Source of the DNA: Podarcis bocagei
Lineage: Eukaryota
DNA: 64,000 nucleotides
NCBI GenBank assembly: GCA_964188305.1
Contig: OZ076894.1
Reading direction: 5' to 3' (one strand)
Part shown: positions 24,901 through 64,000 of the stretch, piece by piece
Layout of the letters: every line of letters starts with the position of its first letter
How positions within the stretch are numbered: the first letter of the stretch is position 1
Notes under the pieces: generated by a model
Told to the model about the DNA's origin: nothing
The model's input: only the letters and a program-made list of their open reading frames with translations
The model's database searches: none
Program-made: the position numbers and the translations under genes

Positions 24901-26217
24901 GACTAATCCAGCCCATGCACTTCCATGTTAGAAAGGCAATGTGTGAACTAAGTCTGAACAAATGTTGGTGGCTTGTGACTCAGTGGCCCAGTTCATATGA
25001 GGATTCATAAACCATGTTTATGAAGTGAGGAATAAGCTTTGGGGACAAGCACTTCTCCCTTGCCTTTCCTCTTCTCTGCTCCCACTGTATGTCGGGTTGG
25101 CACATAGATCCTGGCTTGTGTGAAGCCAGATTTGGCTGTTACAGTGGAATTTGAGAGCTCTAGCTTAAAGTCTGGTAACAAACCAGGCAATGGGATAGGA
25201 AGGATGAGGACCACCTGGCCCCGGTCCTTGTTTATGACTTCATTGTTTTTGAATGGTTTCCCAAACTAGGCTCATTTGGATATGTTCTGAAGATTCAGTC
25301 AAATGTTTCTTGTTGCATTTTATTAGGTAATGCTTCCCACAGCAATAAAGCAGATGTGCAAACACTTGCCTGCACCAAAGAAATTAAGCACATTGCAATT
25401 TGCTTTGCCAGCAAAGCATATGTATGATGTGTCTTCTTTTGATGTCTTGTCGAACGGCTGAGAATTTGGACTCCTCAGAAAAGGGAGGTATTTCAAGTGT
25501 AGCCAAGGTGACAGCCTCCAGATTTCGTAGAGACTGCAGTCGACACTGTCCCTCACCACTAGCCATGCTGGCTGGGTCTGATGAAAGTTATGGTTCAGCA
25601 ACTTCTGGAAAGCACATGTTAGTTACCCCCACATTGAAACAATATTTAATACAACTTTTTGATTCCTTTATTGATGCTTCAACATTCAGCAACAATTGAA
25701 ACGGAGCTTCCGCAGCAGTAGTATTTCTACAATTAGAATACTGCATTTTAGAATGGTCAGCATTTTAAAATTGTATATTTGGTGCTCATACCTAAATGTG
25801 GTATTCATATTTTCCTCCATATACTGCTGTTAACGTGCAGCACAGTAACCAGTATTAATTTTTATTCTCCTTTTTGAGTGCAAGAGATAACACAAGTTGC
25901 CTTAAAACGAGGGAGATGAAAATAAATGCAGAATGGAGAAAGAGATGTTATATTTCATTATGATCTGGAAAACTAAAGATACATGCTGTCTACCATGCTG
26001 AGCCACATGCTGAGAGCAGCAGTGATCTGTTTTTCAAGACATGCTAATCTCTATCCTGGGAAGCCTTTGGCCAGAATATGATCCTTAACCTTTACCGCTT
26101 GTAGTTTGTCATTATGATAGTCCAAGTTCCTTGATCTGGAATATGTATCTACACATCTTATAGTAAAACATTGAATAAAGCCCTTGAACTCAGTTGTGCA
26201 TGAGGAGGTGTCTAGCT

Positions 26218-26704
26218 CAGTGTTTCCCAACCTTTTTTGGGCAAAGGCACACTTGTTTGATGAAAAAAATCTTGAGGCACACCACCATTACAGCCCCGTG
26301 ACGTCAGCGCGCAGCGTCACGCCGGGAGGGACGCACGAAAGTGTAAGTTTCAATTGTTTTCCCTCCCCCTTGCCGGGGAACCTCCAAGCTTTGGGGGTGG
26401 GGGGGGGAGGAGGCAGCAAAGCGAGGCAGGAAGGAGAGCGCGGCTTGGCTGGGTGAGCTTTGGCAGGGGCAGGGAATGAGAGCCGCGAGGCGGGCACTGC
26501 GGACGGAGGCGCTGCCCACCGAGCTCGCAGGCAGCCAGGCAGCCAGACGGCGAGAGCCCCGTGCTGGGCAGCCTCTCCTCGCCGCCGCCGCCCCGCCTCT
26601 CGCCGCCCGACTCGCCCGCCTCCCTCCAGGCAACATCTCGCGGCACACCAGGCAACATCTCGCGGCACACTAGTGTGCCGCGGAACAGTGGTTGGGAAAC
26701 ACTG
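26218..26704. mobile_element. Young non-autonomous hAT, 487 bp, with unique GC-rich interior 26427-26575
   Basis: TIR CAGTGTTTCCCAACC; perfect TSD gtctagct; ends shared with 36861-37600; CpGs retained. Confidence 0.95.
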
Positions 26705-28419
26705 GTCTAGCTAACAGATGCACAGTGCAAAGGTCTTTCATCTTTTCCTATGTGAGAAAGATTTTTACCACATTTGTTACACAGGTGCTACCTGTTTCAA
26801 AAGCTGTACAAAGCCTGGCATTAATTCAGTGTGTGCCTCTTTGAGAAGTTAAGAAAAGAACTGTATGAAGGTTACCAAAACCTCTAGCCAAAGCATTCAA
26901 TAAGTGAAAAAAGCTCCCACCTCCATTGCTTCCTGACATGTTGCCCCCTTAAGGTTATTATGTCACAGTGCTGATGTGAGATGTCAGTGCAGGAGTCACG
27001 TGCTCTACTTCCTTGCCTGGTCTGTCTGTACTAAAAGTGGACACTGTGAAGGCAGGTGTGGTGGTGTGGCATTGGCAGCAAAGCAGGGCAGCTCTTACTG
27101 AACTTGTTGATAGAGAGACTATAGTTATGGAATTCCATTGTATTTGATGGTCTATATTTATGTTCCTAGTTTTAGAGATGGTTTAGCATTCTTTCACTTG
27201 TTCAACCATGCACAGCTTGCATTTTCTAGATCCAAACAAATAGCTTCATATCACTGAGTTCATGTTGATAGTGAAACAAAAGTTTTATGTATTAACAAGG
27301 TTCACTAGGTACCTTTGGGTTTAGTGAAATGCACCTGCCAAATACTCCTACCTATAGCTGAAATGAGCACACAGCTTATACAGTGTATGCAGTTCATGTT
27401 GAGTCAATAATATAAGCACATATACCAGAAGCACCCCTGCTGAAAAATACACATGGCCTTATGCTTCTCGTGCTAATACCAACATCAGCTTAAGACATCA
27501 TCTGTCCATCCTAAATCTTTCCCCCCACCTTGTTTCTTGTGCCAACCTGGGCTGCTGTCACCTCTTTCCTTCCATTCATGCATTATACAGGAAATAAATT
27601 CCATGCTGTTTCCTCCAGTGGTAGAATATAATGGTAGGAATTTGACTCTTCTGTTGAGTTGTGGGACAGCTTTGCATGGAACTGGGAAGTGTCACAACTG
27701 GGAAGTGCAGTTGTGTTTTCTTTCTCTTTTATCCACTCCTGAAATTTGCACGTTTTCTCCATGGATGCATGTGGATGCTTGCTATCAATGTTCAGCCAGC
27801 TCATGTACCTCTCCTCGCAAGAGATATGTAAGTTACATGAGAATTATATCTGTAATATGTAAAGCTGCTCATAAAAGCCTCCTTCATGTTATCCACATGT
27901 AGAGGGCTCCTTCCATGAAGGAGAACAGGATTGCACTACTGACCATGTTCTGATGTTGCATGCTTCCCCAACGCCAACAATGATACATTGTCTTGGGAGA
28001 GTCTCAAAATCCATTCTTACTGTTGGTAATCATATTTTTCTATGAGGGGGGAGTAAGGCATGAACTTCATGGACAGATCACAGCTGTTCAAGCAGTCCAG
28101 TCATGTATACATTGTCATCTGCTGCAGAGACAAGAGGAGAGACAAAGAGGAGAGACATACTGACCTGCTGTTGGGTATCTACAGTGCATGTTCACTTTCT
28201 CTGTTCCCCTGGGTGTGCATTTATTTTTTTCCAGCTGAAAATAATCCTGCATTAATTCCTCCTCTAGCAAAAGTTTTTACTAAAGCTGTCAGCATTGTTG
28301 CTTGAGAAGGGGTTTCATGGTTTGGCTCAGAATCAAACCCGTGTTTCTCATCTATTTTCTTATTAGAATCTTGGCATATTTATAAGCTGTGTGTGACATA
28401 TATATATATATATATATAT

Positions 28420-35400: not shown

Positions 35401-36860
35401 TGGATGTCTGCATAAGTTTGTCCAAATTATTTCTGAATTGGATGGAATGAAGACATCCAAGGTATTTATGCTTGCTATAAAGTGGGAGTGCAATCCTAAA
35501 CCCTGAATCTGTGCTGCAAAGAGGAGCCTTCACTGGATTCCATCAAGCTCTGTCAGTCGGGAGGCTTCCATTGCTACAGAGGCCCCTTCTATACACAGCA
35601 GGGTGGGAAGCTACCTGGAGCTGATGCAGCTGAAGAAAGCCCTTCTCAAAAAACCACCTTCCCACCTGGCTAATAGGAGTGTCAGGATTTGGGATGTGTT
35701 CTGCCATTCCAATTTGCTCCACTGACCAGGTTTTAGGACCACTCCAGTACTTTCTTGCACATTACTGCTACCATAACCTTGCTCCCCGAGGAAGCAGGTG
35801 TTTATACCTTGTGACATTATCTTTAAAGGCTACAGGCAAGACTAAAACAAGGAAGAACTCAAATGAACTACAGTTTTACTCTTCTGCTTAGAAAAAATAA
35901 TAATCACATGAAATGAATATTTGCATTGAATTTTGAATTCTAGCATTGAAAATGATCAAAGTTCCAACAATGTGGACATGACTGAGAAAAGTTTTAGATC
36001 TGCAAATGTTCTTCAGCCATAAAACTAAGAAAAGCAATTCTCGAAATGGACAGTTTTGAGAACAAATGGAACCCATTTGTAAATATCCCTCTGGATAGAT
36101 ATTTAACTCAGAATTCAACAAATTTTAAAGGCTCAAATGCCTCTTGACTTCAAACACAATTAATTAATATTTGGATGTTTTCCTTTAGTTTAAGAAAAGG
36201 TCCCAGGGCTTCTAAACACCAGTCCATAAGAACAAACAAGGAGAAAACCAGGATAAAAATAAAACGAGCAGCAGGACCAATAAAAGACACACAAAGTGTT
36301 TGTTAAAACACCTAGGTAACATGCTGTTTATCACCAAATTAAAAGATCTGTACCTTGTGCAAAAAAGACATCAGGTTCTGCACCTGGCAAGTACCATATT
36401 TAGGGTACTGCAGTGGAAAAGCTTTTCTCTGGTCATTATCCACCTAACTTCAGGAAGACAGGGAGTCAGAAAAAGCATAATAACATTTAGTAGGTTCATA
36501 TGAGCAGTGGTAGTTCCTTAGACACCCAGGTCCCAAAACATTTAGGGCCTTAAGGTATCTGCACATTGAATTTACCTGGAAGCAGGCTGGTAACCAGTGT
36601 TGTTATTTTGAGAGCAAGCTGGTCCCAGCAGCTGTGTTGAGAACCAGTTGAAGTTTCCAAGAAGGGAAGGGCTGTAGTTAGTAGAGCTTATGAGTACAGC
36701 AGGTCTTAAATTCAATCCTCATCTCCAGGAGGATCAGGGAAAATATCTTTTCTGAAACTCTGGAGAACCACTACTAGTCAGTGTTGGCCATACTGAACTA
36801 CATGGACCAATTGCAGTTTGCTGTGTTCCTAAACTTCACATGCACTGCAGTAGTCTAGCC

Positions 36861-37600
36861 CAGTGTTTCCCAACCTTTTTTGGGCAAAGGCACACTTGTT
36901 TGAGGAAAAAAATCTCGCGGCACACCACCATTACAGCCCCGTGACGTCAGCGTGCAGCGTCACGCCGGGAGGGACGCACGAAAGTGAAAGTTTTCAATTT
37001 TTTCCCCTCCCCCTTGCCGGGGAACCTCCAAGCTTTGGGGGTGGGGGGGGGGAGGAGGCAGCAAAGCGAGGGACTGAGGGACGGCGGCAGCTGAGGCGGC
37101 GGCGGCTGTTGTTGTGGTGGCGGCGATAGCGGGCGGAGGAGGGGGTGGTGGCGGGGCCGAGGTGGCCGGCGGCGGCGGGGGAGGCGGCGGCGGGTGGAGC
37201 AGGAGGGTGGCCGAGGCTGGTGAGGGAGTAGGGTTGCCCGGGGCTTGAGGAGCCGTCGCCGGGAGTTGCTGCTGCTGCTGTTGCTGCTGCTGCCCGGACA
37301 TGCCGGCCTCCTCCTCGTCCGCTGTCTCGCGCTCCTCCCTTTTGCACGCGCTGCCCCGCCGCCGCCCCATTGGCTGGGTCCTGTCAGCTGAACCTGTGTT
37401 ATTTCCTGTGTGTGTGTGTGAGGGGAGAATGGAGAGAGAAACCTCGGCACCACCACCGCGGAGCCGCCCCCGGCTCGACGCGGATCCTCGCCGCCGCCGC
37501 CGCCTCTCACCGCCCGACTCGCCCGCCTCCCTCCCACGGCACACCAGCCAACTTCTCACGGCACACTAGTGTGCTGCGGAACACCGGTTGGGAAACACTG
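36861..37600. mobile_element. Young non-autonomous hAT, 740 bp, carrying captured CpG-island cargo (37072-37484)
   Basis: TIR CAGTGTTTCCCAACC; perfect TSD gtctagcc (36853-36860, 37601-37608); about 210 bp of left end and 110 bp of right end shared with 26218-26704. Confidence 0.95.
37077..37301 (-). pseudogene. Transposon-captured fragment resembling the RANBP9 (RanBPM) exon 1 N-terminus, first ~75 codons
   Basis: gccggcATG then MSGQQQQQQQQQLPATAPQ...ATLLLHPPPPPPPPPATSAPPPPPPPP, versus recalled human RANBP9 MSGQPPPPPPQQQQQQQQL...AALLLHPPPPPPPATAAPPPPPPPP. Low complexity and not searched. Confidence 0.65.
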
Positions 37601-37776
37601 GTCTAGCCTGGTGGTTATCAGGGCAAGGATCACCTATAGAGGTTATCTCTGCTCTGGAGAGGCCACAGCTGGTATAACAGCTGTATCTGGTGAAGGTTTC
37701 ATGGATGACACTTAGATTGATCTGGGTAACCAGAGGTCTATTAGCATGTGCAGACTGTGAGCCTGGCACTTTAGGA

Positions 37777-52155: not shown

Positions 52156-52648
52156 NNNNNNNNNNNNNNNNNNNNNNNNNNNNNNNNNNNNNNNNNNNNN
52201 NNNNNNNNNNNNNNNNNNNNNNNNNNNNNNNNNNNNNNNNNNNNNNNNNNNNNNNNNNNNNNNNNNNNNNNNNNNNNNNNNNNNNNNNNNNNNNNNNNNN
52301 NNNNNNNNNNNNNNNNNNNNNNNNNNNNNNNNNNNNNNNNNNNNNNNNNNNNNNNNNNNNNNNNNNNNNNNNNNNNNNNNNNNNNNNNNNNNNNNNNNNN
52401 NNNNNNNNNNNNNNNNNNNNNNNNNNNNNNNNNNNNNNNNNNNNNNNNNNNNNNNNNNNNNNNNNNNNNNNNNNNNNNNNNNNNNNNNNNNNNNNNNNNN
52501 NNNNNNNNNNNNNNNNNNNNNNNNNNNNNNNNNNNNNNNNNNNNNNNNNNNNNNNNNNNNNNNNNNNNNNNNNNNNNNNNNNNNNNNNNNNNNNNNNNNN
52601 NNNNNNNNNNNNNNNNNNNNNNNNNNNNNNNNNNNNNNNNNNNNNNNN
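52156..52648. other. Assembly gap (493 N) abutting a young L2 LINE
   Basis: Run of N. Confidence 1.
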
Positions 52649-58468: not shown

Positions 58469-58935
58469 CAAAAGTGTGGTCCTCAGCTGACAGTGATAAG
58501 TGAAAGGCATGCCGTGTGCATGAGTCTTCTCTCTGACCAAGACTCAAAATCAGGAGGTTTACCCTGCATATTGGATCTGCAGGCTTCCATTTTCACTCCT
58601 TTTCTCTACTTTCCTAATTGTGGCTAGCCTTTAGGTTCAAGGGCTTATTTCCTATCTGGCAGCAAGGGTTGGGTCTTCCAGATCACCTAGCTGCATCACT
58701 ATTTTTTTCAGGGTGCTTTGGTACTAGAAAGAAAAGAGAACACTGGTGTCTCTTAGAAATTTTATTTTAGAATATACCCTCAGGGTATTTGCATACTCAG
58801 ACTCCCAGCAGAGTGTATAGGCAACACATGACTGCAAATACTGTCCTGAAATAAGAAAAAGAAAACGTGGGTTGGCTTTGAGGCAGAGGAAAATTAAAAT
58901 GTGTTAAGAATAGTCTTTTCTTCTGTTTTGTCCAG

Positions 58936-59128
58936 GGTGCTTTGAATGCTGCATCAAGTGCTTGGGGGGCATTCCCTACGCCTCCTTGATTGCCACCATC
59001 CTGCTGTATGCTGGGGTTGCCCTCTTCTGTGGCTGTGGTCATGAAGCACTCTCGGGAACTGTCAACATTCTTCAGACCTACTTTGAGATGGCAAGAGCTC
59101 CTGGGGACACTATTGATGTCTTTACCAT
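58936..59128 (+). CDS. GPM6A: GPM6A coding exon (equivalent to human exon 2), 193 bp, phase 1 to phase 2; N-terminal Cys cluster and TM1
   Basis: Translates (G)[63 protein letters not shown](M), near-identical to mammalian M6a as recalled. Pyrimidine tract ttttcttctgttttgtccAG (AG 58934-58935) and donor GTAAGT at 59129. Confidence 0.97.
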
Positions 59129-60401
59129 GTAAGTCTCAGCTTAACCTTTGCATTTATACCACTGCAATACAAGATGTAATTACTAACCCTCCCTGTGTCA
59201 GGCATTATGCAGCCAAGTGAACAGAAAACATTTGCTTGAATTTCTTCTAAATCTATTTCACAGCATAAGGATATAAAATATTTCTCACTATATAAATATT
59301 TCTATTGATAGTTTTTCATCCTGCAAAATGAGTGTACATTTCAATATCATAAAAAAATGAAATCTAGGGTTGGATGAAATCTAGCTGTGGGCTGCATTCA
59401 GTCTGTGTGGACTATCCATGCTGGTTTCTAAGGAAATGTGAAGGTAGGTGGGTGCTTTAGTGGGTGCAGAAATGGACACTTGGTGGTATTAAGTGTCAGG
59501 CTGTTACAAGTGTTCTGACCATACATGCATTTCCCCTCCATCCTCCTATTTAATGTTCTGGGGGTTCACCTGACCAGAGCTGTTTGGGAGAGGGACACAG
59601 GAGAAGGAGAGAGGGGAAAGCCCCATTGCAGAATTGCAAATCCTTGCACAAGGCTTCCACTGGCAGGACTTGTTAAGTGTTAGCAGGTTGAGCGGTGGCA
59701 AGGAGAACATGGCCACCTAGTAGGAAGAGAGGGTTGTTTTCAACACTGCTTGTGTGCAAGTGCAATGGACTTCCACTCACACAACAGAACTTGGATCTTC
59801 TATTCGTTCCCATGCAATTCCCCAAGCAGGGAGTGTTGGAAGCTCCAGAGCAGATTTTGGGGACATACAGGGGGCTGAAGGGAGGAATTGAGAAAGTCCC
59901 GAAGGATACACTTCACTTTCCAGGAATAGGAAATACTTAATGTGGCGCTGTGTGTGTGTGGCTGGTGATGGAGAATTCACATATTTTAGCTTGATTGCTT
60001 TATGATTGGTGCTCATTAATATTGCTTATATTGCTCTTCTTAAATTCGGTTATATTTTTAGAATTGCATTTAGAATAATGTTTACAAAGCTGGCTTCACA
60101 GCTCAGTCTCTGGTTTATTACTGAATGAAAGCTAACCCGTTTTTCTAGACTTTAACTTAATGAGTCTCTGGGTAGCTGTTATTGCAGAAACATAGTAAAT
60201 CAATGCATTAAGCTTTTCACAAATTATCCAGGTCTGCTCTGTCAGAGCTGTACATGAAACATCAGTCAAGAAACATAGTTATATACAAAGAATTCAGAAA
60301 CAATGATAAAGTATTTATCAATTAATTTGTTCATTTTAAAATACAATTGATGCCTGAAGATTACTTCCATTCCTTGGGAATTCTGCATTTCCCCTGCAAT
60401 A

Positions 60402-63879: not shown

Positions 63880-64000
63880 GATTGACATCTTCAAATATGT
63901 GATCTACGGGGTAGCAGCTGCCTTCTTTGTCTATGGCATTTTGCTGATGGTGGAAGGATTTTTTACAACTGGTGCCATCAAGGATCTCTATGGGGATTTC
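63880..64000 (+). CDS. GPM6A: GPM6A next coding exon (equivalent to exon 3, TM2), runs off the window end
   Basis: AT|G completes Met in frame with the previous exon; reads (M)IDIFKYVIYGVAAAFFVYGILLMVEGFFTTGAIKDLYGDF. Acceptor AG at 63878-63879. Confidence 0.97.

Follow-up and report, generated by a model that had tools for sequence, protein, structure and literature searches.

A probable Pack-hAT transposon family carrying the 5' end of RANBP9 in Podarcis lizards

Introduction

Among the major sources of exon shuffling in plants is the capture of gene fragments by cut-and-paste transposons. For animals, one systematic survey has been reported, and capture was almost always found to be single-copy (Tan et al., 2021; PMC8277862). 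This survey described 208 Pack-hATs in 100 animal genomes. Multicopy Pack-TIRs numbered only four, of which Xenopus tropicalis accounts for three and alligator for one, and the main text of the survey contains no lizard case (PMC8277862). Multicopy Pack-TIRs were reported to favour GC-rich cargo, and a gap-repair/FoSTeST scheme was proposed for the origin of animal Pack-TIRs (PMC8277862). The original prediction for the locus described below held that gene capture by TIR elements is rarely documented in vertebrates. This is true of the multicopy state, but capture itself is documented by the 208 Pack-hATs (PMC8277862).

The element described here lies in a 64-kb stretch of DNA from Podarcis bocagei (64,000 nucleotides of contig OZ076894.1), hereafter the window, which also contains a sister element. 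The two are called copy B and copy A, respectively. Copy B is read here, with a probability of about 0.85, as a Charlie-like non-autonomous hAT in which a DNA copy of the RANBP9 5' end has taken the place of the interior, that is, a Pack-hAT, belonging to an amplified family.

Architecture of the element

The features of the two copies are listed in Table 1. The 15-bp TIR of copy B, CAGTGTTTCCCAACC, shows no mismatch between its left (+) and right (-) occurrences, and the same 8-mer stands on both flanks, so that the perfect TIRs and perfect TSD of the original prediction are both borne out. Elsewhere in the 64 kb, CAGTGTTTCCCAACC occurs exactly only at the ends of copy A (26218 and 26690), and when up to three mismatches were allowed, 11 matches were found in the window against 2.1 expected. 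The TIR opens with CAGTG, in keeping with the YARNG start motif of hAT TIRs. Copy A (26218-26704) is likewise flanked on both sides by an 8-bp TSD, GTCTAGCT.

Table 1. Coordinates of the captured cargo, the hAT backbone and the sister copy in the window
Feature	Position	Strand	Description
Whole element, copy B, 740 bp	36861-37600		hAT ends and captured interior
Left TSD GTCTAGCC	36853..36860	.	same 8-mer again at 37601-37608
Left hAT backbone	36861..37071	+	TIR 36861-36875; GGCACAC at 36889 and 36919; TGACGTCA palindrome 36942-36949
113-aa chimeric ORF with stop	36960..37301	-	76 RANBP9-derived codons, then 37 from hAT backbone
RANBP9-derived cargo	37072..37309	-	8 bp 5' of ATG, ATG 37301-37299, codons 1 to ~76 of exon 1
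Upstream cargo, CpG-rich	37310..37484	-	CCAAT 37369-37373, GC-box-like runs, (CA)6; absent from copy A
Right hAT backbone	37485..37600	+	GGCACAC at 37538 and 37560; 15-bp TIR 37586-37600
Right TSD GTCTAGCC	37601..37608	.	perfect 8-bp direct repeat with left TSD
Sister copy A, including TSDs	26210..26712	+	same ends, other ~150-bp GC-rich interior, TSD GTCTAGCT

The two copies share both ends, as had been proposed. The left ends are 95.7% identical over 211 bp (36861-37071 against 26218-26426), and the right ends 84.5% identical, with indels, over ~116-129 bp (37485-37600 against 26576-26704). An 11-13 bp indel between the right ends derives from a tandem duplication in copy A: at 26621-26664 of this copy a ~22-bp subterminal unit (...GGCAACATCTCGCGGCACACC...) is doubled in tandem, giving one GGCACAC more than in copy B. 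In contrast to the ends, the interiors of copy B (413 bp) and copy A (~150 bp) could not be aligned with each other, and the claim of an unrelated, CpG-rich interior at 37072-37484 holds on both counts. Nine of the 12 GGCACAC heptamers in the 64 kb sit in the subterminal ends of the two copies, a pattern to be expected of putative transposase-binding subterminal repeats.

Both TSDs have T at position 2, a CTAG core, and C rather than A at position 7 when compared with the consensus nTnnnnAn / NTCTAGAN, a comparison that covers two sites only. In Anolis, the target consensus of Charlie-like hATs is NTCTAGAN, and their TIRs include CAGTGGTTCCCAACCT (PMC3014272, Table 1). The TIR of copy B is identical to the latter sequence, the TIR of hAT-N3_AC, at 15 of 16 positions. 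The near-identity of the TSDs of copies A and B can be attributed to this target preference of Charlie-like hATs; mis-set element ends were considered as its cause and rejected, since the preference for NTCTAGAN accounts for it. As a Charlie-like element, copy B has a TIR that begins with CAGTG, an 8-bp TSD whose target is of the NTCTAG type, and GGCACAC repeats in its subterminal regions. No transposase ORF was found in copy A or B, and no autonomous copy within the 64-kb window. As in Pack-TIRs generally, an interior derived from a host gene (37072-37309, from RANBP9) lies between intact transposon ends, here the same ends as in copy A.

Two further observations concern the backbone and copy A. 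The TGACGTCA palindrome is perfect, corresponds to a CRE/ATF-type site, recurs in copy A (~26299-26306) and lies in a GC-rich stretch of the common backbone, which makes the backbone look promoter-like by itself, apart from the cargo. The interior of copy A (26426-26575) has a GC content of 0.73 and a CpG observed/expected ratio of 0.69, and is unrelated to the cargo of copy B. It could be the ancestral interior or another captured CpG-island fragment.

The captured interior and its reading frame

The cargo has a GC content of 0.71 and a CpG observed/expected ratio of 0.84, compared with 0.39 and 0.11 in 5.8 kb of flanking intron. The RANBP9-derived part is laid out as a polyQ run, a non-repeat core and a polyP - ATSA - polyP block. 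A CCAAT box had been predicted on the minus strand, and the pentamer is found at that position. The predicted start codon is also present, but its Kozak context is partial, with G at -3 and T at +4. The frame that had been described as running into transposon sequence is indeed open, with its stop codon at 36962-36960. It is open 5' of the ATG as well, giving a 199-aa ORF that starts with GTG, and a protein search with this longer ORF for further copies returned nothing new.

No domain was found in the 113-aa ORF. The cargo breaks off near codon 76 and does not reach the SPRY lead-in shared by P0002, a squamate ORF described below, and human RANBP9 (7nsc_A). The SPRY, LisH, CTLH and CRA domains that follow the N-terminal low-complexity region of functional RANBP9 are absent, and the ORF product consists of a disordered polyQ/polyP tail and backbone read-through. 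By its predicted content, the cargo is a gene fragment and not a gene copy, and the ORF is a by-product, in which a low-complexity N-terminal tail is fused to backbone sequence.

Homology of the coding part to RANBP9 exon 1

When the 113-aa ORF was compared with 5.8 billion proteins by HMMER, only two matches were obtained. One of these (E=5e-12) is P0002, a squamate ORF on contig L001 (2.2 kb, from a public read set) that represents a complete RANBP9 exon 1; the locus contains the full exon through ...NNLRVHYKG, followed by a GT donor. P0002 matched human RANBP9 (PDB 7nsc_A, Ran-binding protein 9) at 1.1e-41, the match extending over the ALLLH-polyP-AT.A-polyP block, and this alignment agrees with the human N-terminus given in the original prediction. 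Its matches to RANBP10 chains were weaker (4e-22 to ~1e-22), and RANBP10 was rejected as the source of the cargo on the grounds of 4e-22 against 1e-41 for RANBP9.

At the nucleotide level, the cargo was found to be 82-84% identical, ungapped over 152 bp, to L001 and to L003, a contig from a sister read set; the reference for this identity is thus orthologous exon 1 from other squamate read sets. Around the start codon the identity is 24/24, and the homology begins 8 bp 5' of the ATG and stops no more than 2 bp short of the junction between cargo and backbone. The local score of the coding part lies at z=28 relative to dinucleotide shuffles, and that of the 77-bp non-repeat segment between the polyQ and polyP runs at z=14.5. 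The order MSGQ - polyQ - L - core - ALLLH - polyP - ATSA - polyP - A(I/V)A - TTTT is also seen in P0002 and P0131. The coding part of the cargo is thereby shown, at the level of sequence comparison, to be homologous to RANBP9 exon 1. The prediction that the interior is the start of RANBP9 is supported by the HMMER match, by the nucleotide identity and by gene models of Podarcis muralis, and a nucleotide match beyond the triplet repeats was found in the 77-bp core when checked against the squamate orthologue L001. The best orthologue reaches only 82-84% identity over the coding part, too little to fix either the parent or the age of the capture by this comparison.

A multicopy family in Podarcis muralis

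At least 15 distinct UniProt entries of P. muralis were found to combine the cargo, the remainder of RANBP9 exon 1, the hAT backbone and the TIR (P0006, P0007, P0009, P0011, P0023, P0044 and P0122-P0130). They were collected by a search with P0002 and a cluster look-up and compared with the window element by tblastn, and are predicted proteins, not DNA. The entries are short and named 'uncharacterized' or 'RANBP10'. Eight of the models open with a 31-residue peptide that corresponds to the +1 frame of the cargo and is identical at 28 of 31 residues to the translation of 37284-37192; in all of the models the remainder of RANBP9 exon 1 follows. Three (P0023, P0044 and P0129) open with a peptide that crosses the junction between right backbone and cargo at 37484/37485 (GGGGEDPRR). 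At the other end of the element, P0128 closes with peptides from the left backbone (36950-37010), where the tail VPRQGGGEKIE... of the window ORF recurs. Four models (P0007, P0122, P0124 and P0127) finish with GWETL, the translated TIR GGTTGGGAAACACTG, followed by differing residues (D, T, L and LYSIYTT), which implies different insertion sites. At least 15 models with the same cargo and backbone and with different flanks indicate that the family is multicopy and has moved after capture. For P. muralis, numerous copies that agree in backbone and cargo are thus shown, as read from predicted proteins.

Joins of HYKG to WETL in the P. muralis models imply splicing from the native exon-1 donor into the element end. 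On this evidence the long form of the cargo includes the donor and, with it, intron sequence, a point in favour of capture at the DNA level. The P. muralis gene-model copies carry the whole of exon 1, whereas the window copy contains neither codons ~77 to the end of exon 1 nor the splice donor. Because the upstream junction is common to the window copy and the long form, the short form is most simply explained as a deletion derivative of the long form. Peptide identity between the window copy and the P. muralis models is 90%, similar to the divergence among copies. The models are in a shifted frame, and thus give no sign of coding constraint. Overall, they appear to be annotation artefacts on transposon-borne copies of RANBP9 exon 1.

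A second context of the RANBP9 fragment

A further fragment, P0001, was found on another contig (L002:1-1751, read set ERR14042001). It is 97% identical to the cargo from position -15 to about codon 53, with a polyP run that is 12 bp shorter. After about codon 53, L002 continues into unrelated CpG-island-like sequence, where an ATG and a GTGAGT donor are found, and then into AT-richer DNA. No hAT end was found in the 1.2 kb downstream, and no hAT TIRs within the fetched stretch of either L001 or L002, so that within this stretch neither is a TIR-bounded copy. On this comparison, L002 gives at least one further setting in which the RANBP9 piece is found; L002 may belong to a larger mosaic cargo or represent a repair footprint. 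Four differences separate the window copy from the L002 fragment, and two of them are changes of CpG to CpA in the window copy. These changes hint at germline methylation and are consistent with a methylated, decaying window copy.

Alternative explanations

Three alternatives, concerning respectively the RANBP9 identity, the extent of the RANBP9-derived sequence and the route of capture, have to be weighed against this reading. The likeness to RANBP9 might be a chance similarity of polyQ/polyP/polyA coding-like sequence in a GC-rich interior, and some of the protein searches look as this would predict: the composition-adjusted BLASTP comparison of the ORF with P0002 was not significant (E=16), phmmer against PDB sequences returned protocadherin and other proline-rich chains but no RANBP9, and an exhaustive search of a representative library with the 113-aa ORF returned only P0001 and two unrelated long proline-rich proteins. 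The phmmer result can be attributed to composition bias, which masks RANBP9, and together with the BLASTP result it makes the protein-level signal fragile by itself; the case for RANBP9 is carried instead by nucleotide identity, HMMER and the Podarcis models. The z values for the whole coding part and for the 77-bp segment between the repeats exclude a chance low-complexity resemblance, and the same conclusion is favoured by the complete identity over the start codon, by the identical order of motifs in P0002 and P0131, and by the Podarcis models, in which this cargo is followed by the non-repetitive rest of exon 1. In addition, L001 and L003 are genuine RANBP9 and not transposon copies, with a complete exon 1 and a GT donor and without TIRs. 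A chance resemblance is effectively refuted, with hardly any probability left to it.

The proposal that the cargo is a mosaic deserves more weight, although it is on the whole unlikely. According to it, only 37072 to ~37316 derives from RANBP9, the upstream ~170 bp come from another CpG island or from older backbone, and no RANBP9 promoter was captured. It draws on the lack of similarity, on both strands (z=-0.4 and 1.7), between 37310-37484 and the 1.5 kb that precede the RANBP9 ATG of L001, from which it follows that the cargo may be a mosaic, and on the structure of L002, which begins 15 bp before the ATG, changes after codon ~53 to other CpG-island-like sequence, and implies that the RANBP9 piece can occupy other contexts. 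However, the orthologue is 16-18% diverged even in the coding part, and an unconstrained 5'UTR or promoter could be unalignable at such a distance; the null result against a distant orthologue speaks neither for nor against an origin of 37310-37484 in the RANBP9 promoter/5'UTR. The order CA-rich, CCAAT, ATG also exists in L001, with different spacing, and the right-hand junction recurs in the Podarcis models, which makes the upstream block at least as old as the family. Quite improbable, by comparison, is the entry of the RANBP9 piece by way of a processed, RNA-derived 5' fragment or of a nested insertion into a hAT MITE in place of DNA-level switching. The window copy does lack intron sequence, and the stretch from ~-183 to codon 76 could in principle fit one transcript, but the interior of the backbone has been replaced and not interrupted, the 150 bp of copy A being missing from copy B, and the piece is a 5' and not a 3' fragment. 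The HYKG-WETL splicing in P. muralis moreover implies intron sequence after exon 1 in the long form. A retrocopy origin was rejected, given that there is no poly(A), no internal TSD, and that the native exon-1 donor is used in the long-form models.

One feature of the right backbone may be mentioned beside the upstream cargo. A 23-bp exact match, GCCGCCCGACTCGCCCGCCTCCC, links L001:1219-1241, ~310 bp 5' of the RANBP9 ATG, with 26602-26624 and 37510-37531, and thus sits in the right backbone of both copies, including copy A, which lacks the RANBP9 cargo. It runs in the opposite direction to the coding fragment, and its probability of arising by chance was roughly estimated at <=0.004. It may be an older scrap of RANBP9 promoter in the backbone, or a common GC-rich motif.

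Proposed origin of the Pack-hAT

For the Pack-hAT reading, the following course is proposed. A donor hAT would have been broken, by excision or by replication stalling. Repair synthesis would then have moved to the 5' region of RANBP9 as its template before returning to the hAT, so that the interior was replaced and the ends needed for transposition were kept. The resulting chimera would have been mobilised in trans by a hAT transposase and subsequently amplified, and the window copy would represent one insertion of this Pack-hAT family, with the short form of the cargo. A backbone without the RANBP9 cargo is present 10 kb away, as copy A. Template switching during break repair, as in the gap-repair or FoSTeST models, is the most likely mode of capture, and mobilisation in trans is presumed.

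Genomic context in GPM6A

GPM6A exon 2 (...DVFTM) is found at ~58935-59129 and the start of exon 3 (IDIFKYVIYG...YGDF) at ~63881-64000, both on the plus strand and downstream of the element. The RANBP9-like ORF, being on the minus strand, thus runs antisense to GPM6A, at a distance of ~21 kb on the upstream side of exon 2, in agreement with the antisense insertion that had been predicted. A run of 493 N at 52156-52648 is an assembly gap or masked sequence. The window copy is most likely inert, apart from forming an antisense, 740-bp CpG-rich island in the CpG-poor GPM6A intron.

Significance and comparison with known systems

If the present reading is true, a lizard hAT with a captured first exon and at least 15 annotated copies would be among the most prolific of animal Pack-TIRs. 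It would explain the cluster of short 'RANBP10' and 'uncharacterized' entries of P. muralis as transposon-borne pseudo-exons, and would provide a natural system for studying the mechanism of capture, the preference for GC-rich 5' ends, and the effects of dispersed promoter/first-exon modules. A broader proposal, tentative and at somewhat less than even odds, is that the lacertid hAT family is a vertebrate counterpart of Pack-MULEs, one that repeatedly captures CpG-island promoters and first exons and scatters tens to hundreds of promoter/first-exon/splice-donor modules, from which orphan CpG islands, antisense transcripts and chimeric first exons would arise. On such a scheme, several captured modules would already be mis-annotated as genes of P. 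muralis. A literature search for the TIR sequence of copy B, or for RANBP9 together with transposon and lizard, found no report.

The system most similar to the present one is Pack-hAT-N8_XT of Xenopus tropicalis, which carries 291 bp of the CAPSL 5'UTR (PMC8277862). In both, the hAT backbone retains intact TIRs and is flanked by 8-bp TSDs, in both the interior has been replaced by a GC-rich 5' gene fragment of a few hundred bp, and copies of Pack-hAT-N8_XT, too, are located at several loci with distinct TSDs. Unlike Pack-hAT-N8_XT, which has ~3 copies, the RANBP9 family has given rise to at least 15 gene models in the proteome of one lizard, and a start codon is part of its cargo, as is the whole first exon with its donor in the long form. 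The Pack-MULEs of rice and maize are similar in being non-autonomous TIR elements with host gene fragments, post-capture amplification and a GC-rich 5' bias, but they belong to the Mutator superfamily, have TSDs of 9-10 bp and long TIRs, and occur in plants as thousands of elements with many cargos. For the lizard hAT family, diversity of cargo of this kind finds its support here only in the different interior of copy A.

Lizard hATs with common ends, whose centres differ by extraneous genomic 'filler' DNA, have been described as hobo_AC/hobo-N in Anolis carolinensis (Novick et al., 2011; PMC3014272). These elements differ from the present family in belonging to the hobo clade, in having TIRs that begin with TAGGCTTG, and in containing kilobase fillers that are mostly other repeats, with no reported host exon (PMC3014272). 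Helitron capture in vespertilionid bats is another case of a vertebrate DNA transposon amplifying host promoters and first exons, although Helitrons are rolling-circle elements with neither TIRs nor TSDs (PMC4224331). Among these systems, the RANBP9 Pack-hAT is a new and unusually prolific case of the known Pack-TIR type.
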